Shown one piece after another: positions 2,861-15,600 of a DNA stretch of 64,000 nt (positions within the stretch are counted from its first letter, which is position 1; each line of letters begins with the position of its first letter). Both the position numbers and the translations under genes were made by a program. A model generated the notes under the pieces. That model ran no database searches, was not told where the DNA came from, and saw only the letters and a list, made by a program, of their open reading frames with translations. The stretch is taken from contig CP075495.1 of assembly GCA_021613535.1 (NCBI GenBank), forward strand, positions 8,680,001 to 8,744,000. Reading direction: 5' to 3'. Source of the DNA: Adineta vaga. Its lineage: Eukaryota > Animalia > Rotifera.

Positions 2861-4589
2861 AAGAATTTGTTCGCTCAAAGTAATAACCGTGTGTATATGA
2901 ATATATAAGCTGAAAAAGTGACCGAAGTGCTCTTCACTTTATCCGAGAGTCTAAGGAAGAAGAACAAAAGAACAAAGAGGAAAAGAAAGGAGTAGACCAT
3001 CGGTCAGTGAATGTCGTTCTTTTTTTTCCTATCATGATAATACGTGCGATGTATTGTGAAAGTTTTTTTTTCTTAATGTCTCATGGTATGTGTGTGTTCA
3101 TTGTGAAAAAACATTACTTAACATCATTCTTTTAAGATAGGAATGATAATAAAACATCATCAATACAAATCGCTCTTTTAGCTTATCCATTGAATTTCTT
3201 TCAAACTTATCATACTCTTTAATTTCTTTTTGTTCACATAAGAGGTTAATCTCTAATTGTTTAAAATAAATGTCGTGCTCAATCTTCTCTAATGAAGATC
3301 TTTACCATATGTAGAGGTGTTATTTTTCTATATTGTCATTATCATAGGTCAAGTAGTTTGACATTCAAATATAAGAAATGACCTGATATGGACGTGTGTG
3401 TGAATATAAAATTGATGTCGAAAGAATATATATACAAGCCAGCGTGTTGTTTTCAATATATTATTTCGTTTACAACTACTACAATGAGCACGATTAATGT
3501 TCTTTTGTTTTTTTTCTTCTTCTGACTATACGATAAGCGGTCAAGTAGAGTGAGATGACATTGAACTGATAAATAATTCCTTTTTTATCTTTATGTAGCA
3601 CTAATGAAGGTCATGTGCCTATGTGTTCATTGCTTCGAATTTTACTAGTAATAAAAACGAAATGATTCAAATCATATGTGTATATTTGTAAAGAAAGATG
3701 AACAGCATGTGTCGAGTTAATATTGACGCCAACTGTGCATATACGTTGATATCAGATGAATGAAATGAACAAACATCGATAATCACCGCCTCTTTTTTCG
3801 GACACACTCACCATGTGGTCAAATTACAGGAACAAAACATATGCGTCTACCCTTCAATCATATCATATAAACTTACTTTCAAATCGATTGAATAACTCTT
3901 TTTTAAAAATGAATGAAACATTTTACGTTTTGTACATGAATAGTTGCGACTAATGTAAATTTGAAATCTCAAATATTATTGAATAATATCAAAATATAAT
4001 TCTAAACTGTGTACATATTGATTGTGAATAAATAGAAATATGTCTGTCATTTATCGATTTGAATCTGATAGAACATTCAAAAAAGAAAGAAAAGTTAAAA
4101 CGGAAAGCAAATTTCTTTAACTACCTCCGTCTCAATTATATACAGTCTAATGCGTGCAGTTATTCTTCATCTATTTTCTTTCTAATTTGCTTCAAATTAC
4201 TGTAATAAGTACAAACGACAAAAATCAATGATTAATTATTTTCTTACGGCAGACAATTACCGTCATTAGGTAACAATATCAATAACAGTCAAAGTCAGAA
4301 GATATAACCGACAAACGTTGAATGCGAAGACTTTCAATGTTCACAGACAAATAAAGCCTTAGAATTGTGTTGTAACACGTTGTTCTTGTACGATATGATG
4401 CATTAGTAATGTCCTTTCTTTGAGTCATATAAATATAAACATTTATTACATGATATCTAAAAACGTAGACTGTCCAATTAATTAAACTTTCAGACATAGA
4501 TGCAAATCTAAGGTTTCCGCTCATCAAAGCCTTCAACATTATTAACACAGGTTGGATTATCCTTTTTTAGCATTTGTAATTTTTAAAAA

Positions 4590-4694
4590 GTGTTGCTCTG
4601 GCAAGCTAGTATTGCTACCGGCCCGCTACTTTTCGTCATCGCAACATGTATTATATCCGTGAAGATATTTACCTCTTGGTAAGTTGTAATAAGC
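4590..4694 (-). ncRNA. Spliced-leader (SL) RNA gene, copy A
   Basis: Minus strand reads GCTTATTACAACTTACCAAGAG|GTAAAT (SL exon 4694-4673), matching the known rotifer SL exon followed by a GT donor; UUACC/GGUAA stem spans the donor; 105 nt to a T-rich tract. Confidence 0.92.
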
Positions 4695-4825
4695 AATTTT
4701 ACTAGTCGACAGGCGGAGTACGACATCTCTCGTGTCTTTACACATCCTATACATCGTCGGGCTCTCAATAGTAAAATGTGCTGGGACATAGTAAAAGACT
4801 AGGTTTTTCAGACAGGACTTCAGGT
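4695..4825. promoter_or_regulatory. Putative bidirectional snRNA-type promoter between SL copy A and U2 copy 1 (central GCTCTCAA at 4761-4768)
   Basis: 131 bp between divergent starts; motif and flanks align without gaps to the centre of the SL/SL cassettes. Confidence 0.6.
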
Positions 4826-5017
4826 ATCGCTTCTCGGCCTTTTCGGCTAAGATCAAAGTGTAGTATCTGTTCTCGTCGGTTTGAAAGCCGGCGCTGGTCC
4901 CATTGGGGCCAGGCTCTTTCAAGCAGATTTTTGGACATGGGCCAGGATTACCCGAGTTCACTCGGACCTGTGCCAACGGATCGTCTCGACACTGCAGTGC
5001 CGTCGAGTTCGGTCCAC
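4826..5017 (+). ncRNA. U2: U2 spliceosomal snRNA gene, copy 1
   Basis: 5' ATCGCTTCTCGGCCTTTTCGGCTAAGATCAAAGTGTAGTATCTGTTCT with GUAGUA branch-site recognition; stems IIa, IIb and IIc (UUGAAAG/CUUUCAA) maintained by compensatory changes; Sm site GAUUUUUGG; stems III and IV with UGCAG loop. Confidence 0.95.
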
Positions 5018-5379
5018 TCCCGTTTCTTTCGGGAAACGGGAACCCATTATATTAATCAATGTTTATATGATAACACTTTAACTGATATAATTCATCATCT
5101 CTGTAACGGTGAACTAAAATAAACTGTAATTCTACGCACAGTATGATAGTGATCAATAATATAGTATTGCAATGTCTTTCCTCATTGATGATCAAAGTTT
5201 TCTCCAAAACTCAAACCAAACCGTGAAACTATGTTTATTCATAATTTCGCAAAGGATAGAAACAAAGCACAAGAATCTTCCTAGACTGACTACGCAGAAC
5301 AGTCAATCAGTGACCTTTGTAGTCAGTTTACAAAACGTCTGTTCTATTCTCTTCGTTTTCTTTTTTTATTTTATAAAAA

Positions 5380-5484
5380 GTGTTGCTCTGGCAAGCTAGT
5401 ATTGCTACCGGCCCGCTACTTTTCGTCATCGCAACATGTATTATATCCGTGAAGATATTTACCTCTTGGTAAGTTGTAATAAGC
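5380..5484 (-). ncRNA. SL RNA gene, copy B
   Basis: Identical to copy A. Confidence 0.92.
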
Positions 5485-5615
5485 AATTTTACTACTCGAC
5501 AGGCGGAGTACGACATCTCTCGTGTCTTTACACATCCTATACATCGTCGGGCTCTCAATAGTAAAATGTGCTGGGACATAGTAAAAGACTAGGTTTTTCA
5601 GACAGGACTTCAGGT
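5485..5615. promoter_or_regulatory. Putative bidirectional promoter between SL copy B and U2 copy 2 (GCTCTCAA at 5551-5558)
   Basis: Copy of 4695-4825 with one substitution. Confidence 0.6.
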
Positions 5616-5806
5616 ATCGCTTCTCGGCCTTTTCGGCTAAGATCAAAGTGTAGTATCTGTTCTCGTCGGTTTGAAAGCCGGCGCTGGTCCCATTGGGGCC
5701 AGGCTCTTTCAAGCAGATTTTTGGACATGGGCCAGGATTACCCGAGTTCACTCGGACCTGTGCCACGGATCGTCTCGACACTGCAGTGCCGTCGAGTTCG
5801 GTCCAC
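5616..5806 (+). ncRNA. U2: U2 snRNA gene, copy 2
   Basis: As copy 1, with one fewer A in the linker between stems III and IV. Confidence 0.95.
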
Positions 5807-6168
5807 TCCCGTTTCTTTCGGGAAACGGGAACCCATTATATTAATCAATGTTTATATGATAACACTTTAACTGATATAATTCATCATCTCTGTAACGGTG
5901 AACTAAAATAAACTGTAATTCTACGCACAGTATGATAGTGATCAATAATATAGTATTGCAATGTCTTTCCTCATTGATGATCAAAGTTTTCTCCAAAACT
6001 CAAACCAAACCGTGAAACTATGTTTATTCATAATTTCGCAAAGGATAGAAACAAAGCACAAGAATCTTCCTAGACTGACTACGCAGAACAGTCAATCAGT
6101 GACCTTTGTAGTCAGTTTACAAAACGTCTGTTCTATTCTCTTCGTTTTCTTTTTTTATTTTATAAAAA

Positions 6169-6273
6169 GTGTTGCTCTGGCAAGCTAGTATTGCTACCGG
6201 CCCGCTACTTTTCGTCATCGCAACATGTATTATATCCGTGAAGATATTTACCTCTTGGTAAGTTGTAATAAGC
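6169..6273 (-). ncRNA. SL RNA gene, copy C
   Basis: Identical to copy A. Confidence 0.92.
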
Positions 6274-6407
6274 AATTTTACTAGTCGACAGGCGGAGCAC
6301 GATATCTCTCATGTCTTTACACATAGCATTTAGTTGAGAGCATGAAGAAGGATGCGATGTGTAAAGACACGAGAGATGTCGTGCTCCGCCTGTCGAGTAG
6401 TAAAATT
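6274..6407. promoter_or_regulatory. Putative bidirectional promoter between SL copies C and D (GCTCTCAA on minus strand, 6341-6334)
   Basis: 134 bp between divergent SL starts; same central motif as in the SL/U2 cassette. Confidence 0.6.
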
Positions 6408-6512
6408 GCTTATTACAACTTACCAAGAGGTAAATATCTTCACGGATATAATACATGTTGCGATGACGAAAAGTAGCGGGCCGGTAGCAATACTAGCTTG
6501 CCAGAGCAACAC
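6408..6512 (+). ncRNA. SL RNA gene, copy D
   Basis: SL exon 6408-6429, GT donor 6430-6431, terminal stem TGTTGC/GCAACA, then TTTTTATAAAAT. Confidence 0.92.
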
Positions 6513-7193
6513 TTTTTATAAAATAAGAAAAGAAATTAGAAGTACTTGTGCCGTTCTGCTATTTGTTGCGTTCTATGTTTCATTGCATAATCGGAATCAC
6601 AGCACAAATAACAAACTGAGTTGAAATTATACTGATCATAATGTTTGTATAAAAAAAATTCGCAATATCTTGAGAAATAAATATTTGATTCCTTTATAAA
6701 ACAGAATGAAAAATGATTTATTGCATATGTCAAGTGAAACGTTTGGTACTCTATAAGAAAATAATACAATGTGGTATTTATTGATGGCGTTCATGTTGAA
6801 ATTGTTAATGTGACAACATTGACAATGACGTCTATAGTATTAGTGTGAATTGCAACAGAGAGAGAGAGAGAGAGTGAGTGAGAAAGAGAAAATGAAAGAA
6901 GGAAAAAAGAGAAAGAATAACGAATGTAAGAAGTGGGTAGTTCCTCTGTTTGTATTGACGATTTAGTTTGTAGAAAAGAGCAATCGACGACATTAATTGA
7001 ACGGATTGTCATGGTTGGCGTATGCTACTATCAGACAATAATAAGAAGAAATAGAAAAGAAGTGAAAACACAAAAAACGACAAGTGCAATCATTTGGAAA
7101 TTGTCTTTTATAAGCAAGGAAATACGCTTATATTAACAAAAAATATCGTTTTTTGTCTGTACTTCATGTATGCGTTTACATTCTAATGTAAAA

Positions 7194-10100
7194 ATGGAAA
7201 GTCCAAAGATTAGGGCGTCTACTCTGCCTGAAGAATCGGAAACGGTTCCACCAGTCATCGAATCAAACAGACGATTATCATTTCAATCAACGGTATGTTC
7301 AAAGCGATAAAAATAGAATATTCCGTGACTTGTTTAAATAACAGTCAACTGCCTACAAAAAATGTTTTCTTCCAATAATAAAAATTCCTTTTCATATTCT
7401 ATTTTCTATTTAGGTTTTTCGTACACAACGATTAATGCGTGTTCTAAAAACAATAACTCCTTCGAATGAAATGAAAAAAGAAAACTATATGGGATCTACA
7501 ATGGTTGAAGGCACACAGCATCAACGACGTGGTGCTAAAACATTAGAAAAGGTATATAAATATATATATATAACTTATAAATCACAATGACGACAAACAA
7601 TCGAAATAAACTATATGCATATGTTTGTCTTTGTTGACGAAGCGAAAATAATGAAATGTGAACTGATTATAACAAACGATTGTGAGAAAGAAGTAGATAT
7701 ATATCTATATATAGTTTTCTTATGTTAATCTTAATTTACAATATGCTTGAGTAATTTATGTTCAAAGAACAATGATTCCTTCATTCTCTTTCTTCTTTTC
7801 ATGACTTTGAATAGTTTTCTAAATCTCTAGCAATTCCAAAAATTGACATTTCCCGTTTGCATTGAAACTAGTCATTTGCCGGTCGATCATCAAGTGAATT
7901 GTTGGTGCTTTGAGCTGACAAACAAGGTTGTAGTCTTTCCGATTTTTTTTGAATAAAAAAGCGAGAAAAAAGAAAAAAATGCTGTAAAAGAATCAACAAA
8001 GAAAAAAATTAAGATCGCGTAACTCTAAGTATGTTTAAAGAAAAAGAGCTGTTTATTAGATCTTTGAATAGAGAAGGAGAAAAATGTCGACGAGAACAAT
8101 GATGACGACAACAACAACAACACCTCATAATGAACCAACATGTCAATGAGGAGACATTCAAAATTTTCCGCATTTCCTAACGCTGAAACTCGATCACACG
8201 TAAGAATATGACCAGAAATCTTTTTTTCTTTGAAATTCAATTCAATTAATTGAATAAGAGATCTGATTATTATTTATTTATTTAGGCAACTTCAGGAGAA
8301 AGTAGTGAAACATCTAGTGTTAGTCCTGTATTAGGTCAATCAGACAATGCTACTTCTGCTGCTGTTGCTGCAAGTTCACGTCGACTTGGTCAACGCTTCA
8401 TTATTCTTCATTATTCACCATTTAAGGCTGTGTAAATTCATTTAAAATATTTTAATTACTATCTAATATATTTAATTGTTTAGATGGGATTGGGTAGTTA
8501 TTTTACTTGTCTTGTATACTGGTATAATTACACCCTATACAATTTCATTTCTCTCTGATGACGATCAAAAACGAACGCATTTAAATACATTTGCAGCAAC
8601 ACGACAATTTAATCGTGAACGAACAAGTATTCATGTCTTAGTCATTATTGATGTTCTTGTAGATTTTATGTTCATATTTGATATATTAATTAGTTTTCGG
8701 TATGGTTTAAATTTCGATTAAATTAAAATGTAATATCCATTTCTTTTCTAGAACAACATTTGTATTAAAAGAAACGAATGAAGTAATAACAAATCCAATT
8801 TTAATTGCTAAACATTTTGTAATTGATTCATGGAGACGATTTGGTGCCGATATTCTTGGTGCTTTACCATGGGATATACTATTTTTTGGTAATGGAAGTC
8901 ATTCGGTAATGTTTCATTTTGATAATTTGAGCATACACATATTAAATTTTACTTTTATTTCGTTTTCTATAGACAATGCGTCTTGCAAATTGCTTTAAAT
9001 TAGCACGTCTATTACGACTTGTTGCATTCGTTCGAAATTTTCAAAAAACAGAATATCGCTCAGCAGTTCTTTTTCTTTTGATGCTTCTCTTTGCTATTGC
9101 TGCACATTGGTTGGCTTGTATCTTCCATTTTATTGCAATTCTTGAACGACCTAATCTCCAAGTCAAATATTCATGGTTGGATCATCTTGCCGATAAATAT
9201 AAAATGCCTTATCGTATGTTAATTAAAGGAATGCATTCTTATCGATTATTATGAAGAATTTTATTTTCTTTTTAGTGGCGAATGATACGTTAAGTGGACC
9301 GGATACAAAATCAAAATATGTAACTGCACTTTTCTTTGCGATGACTTCATTGACATCAGTTGGTTTTGGAAATGTAGCAGCGGTAAACAATAATAATCTT
9401 TTCTTATAGATTTCTATTGTTATACTAATTTTTCTCATAGAATACAAATGGTGAAAAATTATTTTCTATTCTTTCGATGTTAGCTGGATGTAAGTAACAA
9501 TTTGAGAAAAAAAATCTACTAGATGATATGTCTCATATTGATTTTCTTGTTTGACAGCATTTTTAAGTGCTTCTATTCTTGGAAGTGTAACAACAATCAT
9601 TATTAAATTATATCAAGGTGCAGAAGAATTAAAAGAAATGAAACAAAGTATTGATGATTTTATCAAACATCATCGTATTAATAAACAACTTGCCAAACAA
9701 ATGCAAGAATCATTTGATCATGAATGGAAAAATACGAAAGGTATCGATATGAACAGTATATTGAAAACATTTCCCGAATGTATACAAGCCGACATATGTC
9801 TTCATTTAAATCGAGATTTATTAAATAATTGTACTGTATTTGATGATGCCAGTGAAGGTATATTTCATTATATTTATCTTTGAAAGAAAACTAATTTTAT
9901 TTATCAGTGACACTTCGAGCATTAGCTCTGCTTTTCAAATCAACTCATGTACCACCAGGTGATACACTTATTCATCAAGGTAACTTATAAATTAAGATAT
10001 ACGTCGATGATAATTAGTTTTAAACTACTAGGTGATGTTCTCTATTCGATCTATTTCATACGTGGTGGTCAAATGGAAATATTATTGAATAATGAATCGC

Positions 10101-11361
10101 AAGCTATACTTGGTCAAAATGATACATTCGGAGAAAATCCATGTAATACTGTTACACCAGGAAAATCTCGATGTGTTGTTCGAGGTATTTATTTATAGAG
10201 AAATTATTTTATTACTGTCAATGTTTTCTTATCATTGTTTAAGGTGTAACATATTGTACATTAAATAGAATTCATCGTGAAAACTTATTACGTGTTTTTC
10301 AATTATTTCCTGATTTTGCGAAATCATTTGCAGAACGTTTTCAAGTCACGTTTGATGTTCGACAAGTGAGACAAATTTGTTCGATCTATTTGTATCGAAT
10401 CCTAATCATCATTCTTAACTTTTAGTGTGAATTAAATGAATCAAAACCATTCTATAAATTGGATGAAGAAGTACAAGCATTGATTCGACAGCGTCGTCCA
10501 AAATTACAACGAGAAAAACGATTTAGTATGATGAGTGAACGTGAAGAAGGTAGATTAATATTGAGTAAAAAAAATCAATCTACACATTTTATCGGCGATA
10601 CTTTTTTCAGAAGCAAATCGATTAGCTATTCTACGATCCTGTCGCGATGTTCGTATAAGTGCTGATGCCAATTCCAGACGATCGATGAACACTATTGTTG
10701 AACTATCTCCAAATCAAACACAGGGATCTGATGACGAGATACAATTTGATAAAGAAATACGAAGATTATCCTTAACATCATCAGCTCAAGGTAGAGAGGT
10801 TTTTCATGATTAATCATAATATTCCTTTTTTCTATATCTTTAGGAAGCGCAACCAATGTATGCTCAACTGTTGTTGCTGTATCCAAAAGATCTAAACTAC
10901 ATACAATGAAACTTCCAGAAGAGGAAGAAGAAGAACAACATCAAGAGAAGCGACCATTAACAATGGAGACCAATGTTACAATAGGACAAAACAAGTAATA
11001 AATTCAAAATGACATCATTCAATCAATTAGAAAAAGAAGTTTTTCTCGTTGTAGTTCGGTACAAAAATACGAAACGGGTGCGATACGTAGTCTAGCTGAT
11101 GTAGATGCTGAATTAGCTCTTCTTCAAACGTAATATAGACTAAACAAAATATGTTTTATTCTAACATATCTTTCTCAATCTTTTTTTAGACGTTTCGATA
11201 GTTTTCAACAAGCTCTAGATGATAAAATGAAGATATTATTTAATTTTGCGAATAATATCTCTCAAACAAATATCAGACATTCAACAACGATTTCAAATCC
11301 AAGGAATACTGCAACTACGAATAAAACCTATGCTGTAATAGATAAATTAGTTTTCACATGA
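7194..11361 (+). CDS. ERG/KCNH-family voltage-gated K+ channel (multi-exon), apparently lacking the N-terminal PAS domain
   Basis: [13 protein letters not shown] (S1), KLARLLRL (S4), AHWLACI (S5), [12 protein letters not shown] pore, C-linker [18 protein letters not shown] and CNBHD; ATG 7194 and TGA 11359-11361 inferred by eye. Confidence 0.9.
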
Positions 11362-11718
11362 GTAAAATAAAAAAAGTAGCATTTCTATTCCATATCAACA
11401 ATAAATGAATTTTCAAAAAGATACTTACATTACTCATCTATATTCAACTATAATTTCATTTTCGTCTTTAAAAGTATTTTCTTGGTTATGTATTATCTAT
11501 GCAGATACAATAGCTATATCTCTATTGCAGAAAAAAAATATAGATCATAATTTCAAGATAGTATTAGCGTTTCTCGTATCTAATGATATTGACGCGTACA
11601 CGTGTACCAACACAATTTGATCAAAACAGTATGGCTAAACGATTCAGTGAATAACTACAATGACATGTGACGGCACTTATTTCTCTCTCTCTCTCTTTCT
11701 TTTTTTATTTTATAAAAA

Positions 11719-11823
11719 GTGTTGCTCTGGCAAGCTAGTATTGCTACCGGCCCGCTACTTTTCGTCATCGCAACATGTATTATATCCGTGAAGATATTTA
11801 CCTCTTGGTAAGTTGTAATAAGC
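11719..11823 (-). ncRNA. SL RNA gene, copy E
   Basis: RNA body identical to copy A; upstream flank diverged. Confidence 0.92.
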
Positions 11824-11957
11824 AACTTTTTCCATGGATGTGCAGAGCACGACATCTCTCTTGTCTTTACACATAGCATTTAGTTGAGAGCATAAAGAAG
11901 GATGCGATGTGTAAAGACACGAGAGATGTCGTGCTCCGCCTGTCGACTAGTAAAATT

Positions 11958-12062
11958 GCTTATTACAACTTACCAAGAGGTAAATATCTTCACGGATATA
12001 ATACATGTTGCGATGACGAAAAGTAGCGGGCCGGTAGCAATACTAGCTTGCCAGAGCAACAC
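11958..12062 (+). ncRNA. SL RNA gene, copy F
   Basis: Identical to copy D. Confidence 0.92.
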
Positions 12063-12684
12063 TTTTTATAAAATAAGAAGAGAAAAGACGTCTTGTCTAC
12101 TGACTAAAAAATAACCACTATGATTTAATCTTAATCTTTCCCGAAAGAAACGAGGGTAGCTAGATCAGTATGATCCTCGATTAGATCCATGTATACTTGG
12201 ATAGTCCTAATGAATGTTGAAAAATCTGCTTGAAAGAGAATATTACATAATTATTTCACAACTTTCATCCTTGTAGAAAATCGCGCTATGTTAATTATGT
12301 TCGTTTGATTTCGATTTGTTAACTCATTCATAAGAGTATAATAATGTTGGTTTATATTTTAGGTGACATTTTAAATGTCCTTCATTAAAGTATATTTGTA
12401 TAATGTATAAGATTAATAAAGAGAAAAAGAATCGTAACATCAACGAAAATATTTGTGTTGAAAAGAGAATGTAAAAGAAGATAAAAAGAATTACAATTAA
12501 AAAAATTCGCTTGATGGCGAGTAAAAGGTATTTATATCTATATCCGTCATGATGATATTTGTAGTTTGTCACTAATGGAATAATAGATTGATATGTTTCA
12601 GATGCATGAGGAAAAACTCGCTGGAAATGAGTGTAGGAACAAGATAAATACAAGCTAAAAGTATAGAAATGTCAACGAAAATTT

Positions 12685-15600
12685 CTAATGATATGGCACT
12701 AAAAACTGTACGAGACACTTTATAACTAAGGATGAACCATTATTCAAGTAGATTGTTCGTGTAAATGCATTCGGTGGTTGAGTAAGAAATGTTTCGAGTG
12801 AACATGGTAATATATCTGCTAGACGTATTGCTGTTGAACCAATATTATCTAGCAGGAGAATTAAAAAGATTTGGTTTGATGAAGAAAAATACAGTTTTCC
12901 TAAACAAACCATCAGCTGAAAAATATTTATTGTCATAGAGATTGATATGAATGATATCTTCGACAAGATTATGAAGAAGAAATTGCATAGGAATATTCCA
13001 TTTTGGATTAGCTGATCGTTTCACATATGGTGTTTTCAATGTTAATGCGCCAACAGTTATCTCACAAAACGGATTAACAATACCTATTCAGTAAAAAGAA
13101 ATGATTAAATATTTTCATTCTTTCAAAACAAAAAAGAAAAAATGCTACGAACGAAATCGTTCAAGTGTTGGAATAGATGGCATTAAATTATGAGCTTCTT
13201 GTACAACTAGAATGAGCCGAGCAATAGCCGGTTTCGTTTCATATTCATTATCATCATCAATAGCTAATAATGCTTTATTAGTAACAATTAATTTCTCTAT
13301 AGTATGAAGTTCATTTAGAGCATTATTAATTGCTCGTACCCATAATGTACTAAAAATAGAAATAAAATTCATTTATTTGGAATAAATCAATTATATTTGC
13401 AATTGTACCGAATATTCGCTTGTTGTGTTCTTAACACTAATGGTTTCTCATAGATTTTTGTAACAATCGAAAAAGTTAATTGATCTGTGACTGATTCACT
13501 TGCAGCTATAACATCAGTTAAAAATAATGGCTAAAATAAAAAGAGAGAAAATGAGAAATATTCTTGAAGAAGATTTCGTTTATTTTGAAAACGAACGAGT
13601 CGATAGATTTTCAATTGTAAATTTGCTTTTCGTTCAAACAATTGTGCTTGCCAATTAGTTGATGATACTTTTGAAGTTGAAAAAAGAAGAAAATCATTGA
13701 ATAAAAATACTAATAATTCTTTTCCACTTGGCATCTAAATCAATGAAATAAAACAGAATTTTTCAACTTAATCTGATTTACTTTCGCTATAAAACCGTGT
13801 AGAAGTAGTTGTCGTTGCGTATGAAATTTCGTACGAGAATTAAATTTGACGAATTCATCGAAAATATATCCATCCGATGAGTCCTCATCGCAACTAAAAC
13901 TGAAATGTCGTTGTAACCAATCTAAACGGACACTATTTTCTTGTTCACAAATTTGTTTATTGATACGTTCATTTAATTGTCGTGCACATTCATATGCTCG
14001 TTGAATAAATTGATAATCTGGATGATCAAGACTTGTATGTTTAAGAATTTTTTCGATTAATAATGGATAACGTGTCACACGTTGTATTGGCTTGGTAAGA
14101 AAACCATTTAATGATAAACCACCAGTTTTAGTTTGAAAAATTTTTAAATATGATCGAAATTGTTTATTGGAAGTAATTTTTGATTGTAAATATTTATTAG
14201 CTTGTGAACGACAATTACAATATTGAAAATAAACATCAGCCATATAAGGAATATAGGAACAAAGAATTTCACCAATGCGTGTTGATTCATTAATTATCAT
14301 ATTCGATGAAACATGAGATGATGATAATGATGATGATTGTGGAACGATATTATCATCTAATCGTTCAATAGTTAAGGAACGCTTTCCTGTAAACATATTC
14401 GTTGATGAAGGTTGATTAAGATCACCTTCAGCAAATAGTTTCATTGGAATCTAAAAATTGAATATATAATTCGATCCATATCTATATGCTTTCTTTTTTT
14501 AATGATACTAACATTTGCAATTCCTGCAATATTCGACATTGATGCTGAACGTGGTGTTCGAATACAAATATTGTCATCATCAAATGTCAAAACATGTTCT
14601 CTATAATTTACTTGATCTTGTAATGTAGATAGAAAAACACTATTGCATGCAATTAAACTAAACCAATTACTGAATAATTGTTCTATTTCATGATCACTTA
14701 AAATTCGACCATTACTTAATGGTTTAATAAATTCATTAGCAACTGTACTTAAATCATTAACATAACGTTGTTCCGTTTCAATTAATTCTCGAATAGCTGA
14801 TATTCGAGAGAAATTATTTGCTATTATATGATGAGATGATAATGACTCAGTGATTAATGTCGATGAATCATCAGTTGATGTGATAGTCGTATCATCACAG
14901 AAAGGTTGTTGAGATGAGTTCGCTGTTGTTGGTGTACATGGAATTATATTGGGAGAGAGATAACATGATTTAGATGAAGCTGAAAAGAAGTAATTCAATA
15001 TAATGACAATTGATTTGATTCAAACAATAGATCATGCATAAGAACGAAAGTTTTTTTTTGTAGAAAATAGTGGATATATCATGCAGCATTGATTTGATTT
15101 GATTTTTTTTTTCAACTTATTTTTAACTTACGACAAGTAATAGTAAAAGCTGTTTTATGATTATGAAGTGAATGACGTTTATGTTTGCTGGTCGTTGGTG
15201 CTGAAGCTGATGTAAGTGTTGGAAAACAACAACAAACAAAAGAAAGCACCTTTTCCAACATATTCTTTTTCTATTAAAAGAAAATATTAAATAAATGAAA
15301 ACACAATAGGATACTTTTTTGTTATACATATTTCATCTAATTTTTCATTTAAACCTATATATTTAAATATTTCTGCGTTTTTTCTTTGCATACGAATGAG
15401 ACAAAACTAACAGTAGGCGAATATAAATAAGAAAAATACACTGATGTGAAAGTATAGAAAAATACTACTGACTGGTGACATGAAGGCATATAAATATATC
15501 CTACGAAAGGTTTGGATCATCGTTATCACCAGGTTTAACAAAATGAATATGAGAACAAGAAATAGGAAATCACTATGGACTGATTAACTAAAACATATAT

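Follow-up and report, generated by a model that had tools for sequence, protein, structure and literature searches.

Head-to-head spliced-leader RNA and U2 snRNA genes with a common PSE-like upstream block in Adineta vaga, a bdelloid rotifer

How trans-splicing animals sustain the spliced-leader (SL) RNA that they consume, and where SL genes originated, are open questions, and SL RNAs bear no sequence likeness to one another between phyla. A 64,000-nucleotide stretch of the Adineta vaga genome (assembly GCA_021613535.1, contig CP075495.1, C2:8680001-8744000; hereafter the window) raises both questions at one locus, where six SL RNA genes and two genes for U2 small nuclear RNA (snRNA) stand in divergent pairs: are these working genes, and what ties the SL genes to U2? 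The evidence makes it probable that this is a genuine multicopy bdelloid locus of SL RNA and U2 snRNA genes, organised as small separate units with a common upstream block that resembles a proximal sequence element (PSE). The host assembly comprises 100,824,805 bases in six contigs, cited below as C1 to C6, and is a chromosome-level assembly of six chromosomes, with 1, 2 and 3 homoeologous to 4, 5 and 6 (PMC8494291).

The window has six copies of the leader together with its splice donor, taken as the 24-mer GCTTATTACAACTTACCAAGAGGT, where chance would give 0, and the six 105-nt genes that these open show 100% mutual identity, in agreement with the preliminary description of this stretch. To all remaining copies in the genome, they are at most 87% identical. 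The divergent pairing proposed for all eight SL and U2 genes is confirmed, with spacers of 131, 131, 134 and 134 nt, and the two pairs formed by SL genes alone are palindromic, at 97% identity in the third pair and 92% in the fourth. Two SL-U2 units lie in tandem (Table 1), followed by a third that begins in the same way, with U2 replaced by a plus-strand SL gene. The cluster had been delimited as 4584-12079; its gene content stands, but the right end does not, as a decayed U2 gene lies beyond it. This remnant is convergent with SL gene 6, and scores 73 against a shuffle maximum of 31. Across positions 4400-6700, 30 of 30 bins are covered by contigs from an independent run of 2013 that is labelled as the same species; these contigs are too short to fix the number of 790-bp units.

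Table 1. Features of the SL RNA and U2 snRNA locus, in window coordinates; distances with a minus sign are counted from the first base of the gene.
Feature	Position	Strand	Remarks
SL RNA gene 1	4590..4694	-	22-nt leader 4694-4673, GT donor 4672-4671
SL RNA gene 2	5380..5484	-	24-mer match and sequence identity
SL RNA gene 3	6169..6273	-	24-mer match and sequence identity
SL RNA gene 4	6408..6512	+	palindromic (97%) with gene 3; arms 6146-6329, 6352-6535
SL RNA gene 5	11719..11823	-	24-mer match and sequence identity
SL RNA gene 6	11958..12062	+	24-mer match and sequence identity
U2 snRNA gene 1	4826..5044	+	Rfam match 4826-5022, remainder is the 3' UUCG hairpin extension
U2 snRNA gene 2	5616..5833	+	Rfam match 5616-5811; 3' hairpin to ~5833
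Two tandem 790/789-bp units	4551..6129	.	each is SL(-), 131-nt spacer, U2(+), 357-nt tail
PSE-like block ATGTGTAAAGACA, SL gene 1	4733..4745	-	-51 to -39, matrix score 19.8
PSE-like block AATGTGCTGGGACAT, U2 gene 1	4775..4789	+	-51 to -37, score 11.1, p=0.0018
PSE-like block, SL gene 2	5523..5535	-	
PSE-like block, U2 gene 2	5565..5579	+	matrix match
Back-to-back PSE-like blocks, third pair	6312-6324, 6357-6369	-, +	32 nt apart
Back-to-back PSE-like blocks, fourth pair	11862-11874, 11907-11919	-, +	
Decayed U2 3' half	12136..12238	-	U2 nt 89-210, internal deletions; Sm site and 3' hairpin retained
Ion-channel gene exons	8476..10198	+	Ion_trans and Ion_trans_2 pore matches; between third and fourth pairs

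The identity of the SL genes follows from the leader itself. In all six copies, the 22-nt leader GCTTATTACAACTTACCAAGAG is followed by a GT donor, and it equals nucleotides 2-23 of the published 23-nt rotifer SL, GGCTTATTACAACTTACCAAGAG (PMC3795323 Table 1), which bears out the earlier reading of the 22-mer as the rotifer SL exon. According to the account given in PMC1925144, this leader is carried by more than half of bdelloid mRNAs and derives from an RNA of ~100 nt. An alignment of 25 diverse copies, drawn from the host genome and from metagenomes, revealed that the leader, the donor, a stretch AUGUUGCGAUGACGAAA of the intron part that is predicted to be single-stranded, and the 3' end UGCCAGAGCAAC vary little or not at all, with conservation stopping at GCCAGAGCAACAC, giving a predicted RNA of ~105 nt. 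In the consensus fold the leader pairs with its own splice donor in an invariant stem (UACC/GGUA), and a long 3' domain is closed by GUUGC/GCAAC, with six base pairs of its inner stem retained through two-sided changes. The window variant, recognisable by its diagnostic 3' stem GUAGCGGGCCGGUAGCAAUACUAGCUUGCC, keeps all consensus pairs and looks intact, because its differences from other genome copies are mainly compensated changes. T-rich and A-rich sequence follows the gene, and the T run, only 3-5 long and unconserved, argues weakly against an RNA polymerase III terminator. With a permissive threshold, Rfam returned no SL family match across 3500-13500; its MIR6217 match (34 bits, threshold 110) and its MIR1919 match (29 bits, threshold 85), at the palindrome centre 11839-11941, were rejected as hairpin artefacts. 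As a separate structural observation, next after the GUUGC/GCAAC helix comes a symmetric GA/GA internal loop (gene at 4590-4694; alignment columns 63-64 and 108-109). It lies in the invariant GCGAUGACGAAA...CCAGAGC and might be a tandem sheared G-A motif.

The two U2 genes are matched by the Rfam U2 model (RF00004) at 138 bits (4826-5022, plus strand) and 143.8 bits (5616-5811, plus strand), over the full model (1-192) and against a gathering score of 46, with gene 1 carrying a 1-nt insertion relative to gene 2. Their alignment contains both the branch-point-pairing GUAGUA and the Sm site AUUUUUG. The preliminary identification of two intact U2 genes is thereby upheld, although not the 3' ends then assigned to them, 5017 and 5806, as the Rfam matches end at 5022 and 5811. 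A conserved UUCG hairpin, covered by RNA-library contigs, takes the transcript further, to ~5044 and ~5833. In soil and other metatranscriptomes, contigs of 214-222 nt run from the first base of U2 to ~5830-5833 through this hairpin and, with 5 differences from the window, come from relatives; RNA-library contigs over U2 gene 2 span 5615-5833 with five differences. Since soil metatranscriptome contigs traverse the hairpin, the stable U2 may have a length of ~215 nt instead of 192 nt. The hairpin, with 9-10 bp and a UUCG cap, lies directly 3' of every bdelloid U2 examined, including those of the window (5023-5044 and 5812-5833, CCCGUUUCU-UUCG-GGAAACGGG) and of the metagenome loci L060, L064, L056, L063 and L036; its stem varies mostly from G-C to G-U, with no clear two-sided change seen.

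What SL and U2 genes have in common is found upstream. Profiles of the 75 nt preceding all SL and U2 genes, anchored on the first gene base, contain a PSE-like block, ATGTGTARAGACA, at -51 to -38, and no TATA box. The block is visible in four independent sets, namely SL and U2 genes from the genome, and SL and U2 genes from metagenomes, taking the form A..TGTARAGACA at -51 to -39 in SL, and AATGTGt..AGACa at -51 to -38 in U2. Metagenome SL profiles hold nearly no information from -75 to -52, the conserved positions on either side being -51 to -39 and -32 to -21; likewise, in direct SL-U2 cassettes of different groups, the spacer is unalignable apart from the two PSE-like blocks. In the window, each spacer contains two back-to-back blocks, 29-32 nt apart, and the near equality of SL-SL and SL-U2 spacers reflects the equal distance at which both types of gene place the block from their start. 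The promoter scores of the six window SL genes, 18.7-19.8, are among the highest of the 76 copies in the genome. To avoid circularity, a matrix was built from metagenome SL genes only (-52 to -38, 71 unique sequences) and applied to the 100 nt upstream of the genome's snRNA genes, with p values taken against 5000 random 100-nt windows. For 17 of 19 U2 genes the top-scoring site lay at -51 to -37, and an eighteenth had it at -50 to -36; p did not exceed 0.013 in any of these 18. Genome-wide, the exact 13-mer block has 30 matches against 16 in the reversed control, 12 of them at SL or U2 genes; as the others are at background level, it marks no other large gene family.

The same matrix found nothing significant in the 12 upstream regions of U1, U4 and U5 genes (0/12; best p = 0.03, at -93). 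All 12 instead carry CTACTGNGCAATTTTTGC or TTCACCGATTTTGTTTTGCA at about -62 to -44 and a TATA-like box near -30, the box that SL and U2 genes lack. On these profiles, the genome would have two promoter classes for Sm-type snRNA genes, with SL RNA predicted to share that of U2 alone. Exact patterns of the U1/U4/U5 elements gave no match near the seven U6 genes, and the exact pattern TTCACCGAT has nine genome matches against two in the control. The pattern TTCACCGATNTNGTT also has nine genome matches against two in the control, and the six that lie outside U1 and U4 genes may mark further small-RNA genes.

The genome-wide census places the window's cassettes in a broader scheme. The leader 24-mer, allowing up to two mismatches, has 60 matches in the whole genome, 30 per strand, and none in the reversed control; sensitive blastn on the fetched loci raised the count of SL-like copies to 76. 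About 50 of these look intact, meaning that the leader has no more than one mismatch, the core and tail are conserved, and the promoter score is at least 9. A tabulation of what lies upstream of SL genes, proposed earlier as a check, revealed that 72 of the 76 belong to head-to-head SL pairs, with gaps mostly of 132-135 nt; three face U2 directly (two in the window, one at C5:10934566) and one lies behind U2. The genome has 19 U2 genes, of which 14 adjoin SL: three face an SL gene directly, and 11 have a degenerate SL arm 149-223 nt ahead of them. Among the remaining five, two face each other and three have no neighbour. Besides the window, U2 genes cluster at C5:10.91-10.93 Mb (eight genes) and C6:4.52-4.53 Mb (four), where the unit has three parts, an intact SL gene head-to-head with a decayed second SL arm, then U2, such that the intact SL gene and U2 are still divergent, 360-580 nt apart. 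The cassette envisaged in the preliminary description, with SL on one side and an exchangeable partner on the other, therefore fits three of the 14 SL-linked U2 genes, and fails for 11, which belong to the three-part unit.

Linkage of SL genes to other small-RNA genes was confined to U2. Rfam over the 136 kb of the genome's SL loci found U2 only, with no U1, U4, U5 or 5S, and the window likewise yielded no 5S rRNA gene by Rfam. The other snRNA genes (6 U1, 3 U4, 3 U5 and 7 U6) are located elsewhere. Among them is a head-to-head U1 pair, C6:4233946-4234107(-) and C6:4234356-4234518(+) (L153, L149), 248 nt apart, in which each gene has a different one of the two upstream elements of the U1/U4/U5 type; divergent pairing is thus not unique to SL genes.

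Environmental bdelloids extend this scheme beyond one genome. An exact search of public contigs for the leader followed by GTAA returned 93 contigs, amounting to 489 kb, from moss, soil and other samples; as these were selected for containing SL, they are uninformative on the share of U2 genes without an SL neighbour. Within 650 nt upstream of the 186 SL genes tabulated, 132 have a second SL gene head-to-head, with gaps of 132-135 nt in nearly all. A further 12 have U2 head-to-head (gaps of 133 nt in seven, 137 nt, 144 nt, and 235 nt in three), three have SL in another orientation, 20 have nothing, and for 19 the contig end was reached. Head-to-head pairing is a genome-wide, cross-species rule. 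Another ten metagenome U2 genes follow an SL gene in tandem, either 141 nt or ~300-345 nt away, convergent forms occur as well, and no U1, U4 or U5 gene was found in the 489 kb. The seven 133-nt SL-U2 cases constitute one sequence family, and together with the 137-, 144- and 235-nt cases represent at least four distinct groups. When 165 unique SL genes were placed in a tree and labelled by partner, the U2-facing genes formed no clade, the gene being too short to resolve, so orthology of the direct SL-U2 cassette across species is not claimed. In one group of environmental bdelloid contigs (L063, L068 and L081), two SL genes lie tail-to-tail, with ~145 nt between their 3' ends and one of them facing U2 at 235 nt, an arrangement not present in the window's genome.

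Together, these surveys show that bdelloid SL genes have the head-to-head pair as their ancestral repeat unit, to which U2 is attached variously: directly head-to-head, as in the window, behind a decayed SL arm, or in tandem. Each SL and U2 gene would be its own small transcription unit, with the block acting as a putative PSE, read by a predicted snRNA-type complex (SNAPc-like, with RNA polymerase II). Such a common promoter class would let the cell raise or lower consumable SL RNA and U2 together.

How the units multiplied can be read from the dispersed pairs on C1, C4 and C6, which combine two old and distinct arm types, one with the leader ..TTAAAAC.. and its own upstream sequence, the other with ..TTACAAC.., and which would therefore have been copied as whole pairs. 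The leader variant C9->A, GCTTATTAAAACTTACCAAGAG, marks one arm type at eight or more loci (for example C4:2216454, C6:1428195 and C6:6374888), and the promoter and RNA body of these arms look intact. Dispersed pairs have 200-700 bp of common flank at 77-89% identity, with borders that vary by copy, which fits old, decayed segmental copies rather than an element with fixed ends. The identity of the six window SL genes, maintained even across the channel gene, points to gene conversion, and remnants of U2 beside SL pairs (C1:2170112, C6:2897166 and window 12136-12238) suggest a long-standing membership of U2 in the unit, with frequent loss. The units would accordingly have spread by duplication of whole pairs, with gene conversion keeping copies alike within a cluster.

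Palindromes of this kind might be taken for miniature inverted-repeat transposable elements (MITEs), or for passengers of a transposon, with arms that merely resemble leader genes. Some 36 pairs on five of the six contigs, the flank similarity of dispersed pairs (200-700 bp, 77-89% identity), the palindromic form, and the weak, sub-threshold Rfam matches of one pair to miRNA hairpins would be expected of such an element. Yet the ~36 pairs in 100.8 Mb are tens of copies rather than hundreds, their similarity borders vary, with neither fixed termini nor definable target-site duplications, and the arms of dispersed pairs are two old gene types and not homogenised terminal repeats. The arms are moreover structured RNA genes, with an invariant leader and donor and covarying stems, and the leader terminates an abundant contig of a probable RNA run. 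A mobile origin is therefore extremely improbable, in line with the earlier warning that a repeat finder would mislabel the pairs as a MITE. Only marginally better is the idea that a single, oriented bidirectional element in mid-spacer drives both genes. The spacer centre GGAAGAAGCAAACGAA is indeed similar among the genome's dispersed pairs, and non-palindromic, but positions -75 to -52 are nearly free of information across metagenome copies, with -51 to -39 and -32 to -21 conserved on each side; given this lack of central conservation, the similarity is explained by common descent within one genome. As every gene has its own block at a fixed distance, and U2 genes without a partner retain it, a central element is highly unlikely, and what SL and U2 have in common would be a promoter class, and not a shared bidirectional promoter.

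A more serious contender holds that pairing and linkage have no regulatory role, SL genes having undergone inverted duplication, with U2 caught in the unit and co-amplified. The disorder of U2 placement is in keeping with this, as U2 may face SL head-to-head (122-144 or 235 nt), stand in tandem with it (141 or ~300-345 nt) or be convergent; so too are the decayed SL arms adjoining U2 in the C5 and C6 clusters, the U2 remnants beside SL pairs, and the presence of the same block at unlinked U2 genes. There are also 19 copies of U2, compared with 3-7 for U1, U4, U5 and U6, as hitch-hiking predicts. Against it, the SL-SL spacing of ~133 nt has been kept in 132 metagenome genes from many samples, despite a diverged spacer, the linkage of SL and U2 recurs in at least four distinct environmental bdelloid groups, and a block common to SL and U2, though not to U1, U4 and U5, calls for an explanation beyond hitch-hiking. 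A neutral by-product is on balance unlikely, if far from negligible. Of similar standing is the bolder proposal that the two putative snRNA promoter systems, TATA-less ATGTGTARAGACA for SL and U2, and the other element with a TATA-like box for U1, U4 and U5, would define a trans-splicing regulon with a specialised initiation factor, the cassette being a selected unit; this is advanced tentatively, the factor being, purely by way of example, a diverged copy of a SNAPc subunit in this old tetraploid. One more possibility is that an adjacent U2 gene was the source of the rotifer SL gene's promoter at the time trans-splicing arose in the lineage.

Several observations weigh against reading the locus as working SL and U2 genes in selected units. 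U2 genes far from any SL gene (on C3, on C4 and at C6:5.17 Mb) also carry the SL/U2 block. Adjacency would hence be unnecessary for membership of the promoter class, and the coupling of SL supply to the spliceosome that the preliminary description had put forward, if there is any, would need no adjacency either. Many SL arms adjoining U2 are decayed, which indicates turnover rather than a strictly selected cassette. The extra 5' G of the published leader is not encoded, as a T precedes GCTTATT in every gene copy, and a canonical Sm site (RAU3-6GR) is absent between the donor and the 3' end in all 25 aligned SL copies; a putative motif is reported in the 2005 description of bdelloid SL RNA. As for transcripts, RNA and DNA runs were available as assembled contigs only, and were compared over positions 4400-6700 (2301 letters). 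The U2 contigs differ from the window at 5-7 places, which assigns them to other copies or to other species; the SL intron is overlapped by a single contig, a low-depth variant; and none of the contigs compared was traced to the window's own six SL or two U2 copies. Contigs that match just the 22-nt leader are probably too short to align. Speaking for use of the leader is a contig of 94 nt and depth 744, from a presumed RNA run labelled as this species: it ends in the leader (window 4663-4694) and extends by 61 nt of non-window sequence containing an ATG, as would be expected where an abundant trans-spliced mRNA begins. Its alignment is likely due to a chance longer match.

Between the third and fourth pairs, and outside the RNA gene cluster, lies a multi-exon ion-channel gene (8476-10198, plus strand), which has a K+-channel-like pore (TSVGFGN) and one exon resembling a cyclic-nucleotide-binding domain.

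Comparison with known systems clarifies which aspects of the locus are new. In C. elegans, SL1 lies opposite 5S, and nematode SL and 5S genes are divergent. The bdelloid cassette resembles SL-5S repeats in holding multicopy SL genes in a short unit with another small-RNA gene, and the nematode form also in orientation. It differs from them in that 5S, a partner transcribed by RNA polymerase III from an internal promoter, is here absent by Rfam, its place being taken by a second SL gene or by U2, with the same upstream motif as SL. SL genes within 5S repeats are also found in Euglena, as a 0.6-kb SL-5S repeat (PMC2784804), and in dinoflagellates (PMC3101222). Closest is Perkinsus marinus, in which S-type SL RNA genes are clustered with U2 and U4, and are likewise physically linked to U2 in repeated units; this organism is an alveolate protist, in which U2 and U4 lie downstream of SL, U4 is included, and neither head-to-head SL pairs nor a shared promoter motif were reported (PMC3101222). 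The earlier statement that SL genes are linked to 5S or snRNA repeats in other phyla agrees with P. marinus (U2/U4) and Euglena (5S). Animal snRNA promoters depend on the PSE and SNAPc, and TATA-less vertebrate forms belong to the polymerase II class (PMC9652321, PMC6004067). The rotifer block is alike in placement, being conserved ~50 nt upstream and at a constant spacing from the gene start, and has no sequence relation to the PSE of human or fly. The norm that all Sm snRNA genes use a single PSE also appears to be broken here, with U1, U4 and U5 predicted to use a different element and a TATA-like box.

Within rotifers, bdelloid SL RNA and its use were described by Pouchkina-Stantcheva and Tunnacliffe (2005, Mol Biol Evol 22:1482; via PMC1925144, PMC3795323), and, as far as these citing papers relate, their RNA agrees with the genes presented here in the leader (nt 2-23 of GGCTTATTACAACTTACCAAGAG), the length of ~105 nt and the GT donor. 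By the same accounts, the RNA and its use were the subject of that work; the present analysis adds the head-to-head pairs, the linkage to U2 and the promoter block. A literature search, outside which much subscription literature lay, found no paper on rotifer SL gene arrangement or snRNA promoters, which accords with the earlier view that the arrangement is undescribed in rotifers. What is new is that SL genes across bdelloids have the head-to-head pair as their basic unit, that they are linked to U2 exclusively, and that SL and U2 have in common a block which U1, U4 and U5 lack.

For bdelloid genomics, the census of ~50 intact-looking SL genes, with their pair structure and diagnostic intron variants, aids annotation, as repeat finders would otherwise mask the palindromes. 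A dedicated promoter class, if true, would be a rare split within the Sm-snRNA promoter system, and would offer the animal a route to tune its trans-splicing capacity, for example during recovery from desiccation. The locus thereby provides a testable handle on the co-regulation and origin of trans-splicing components.

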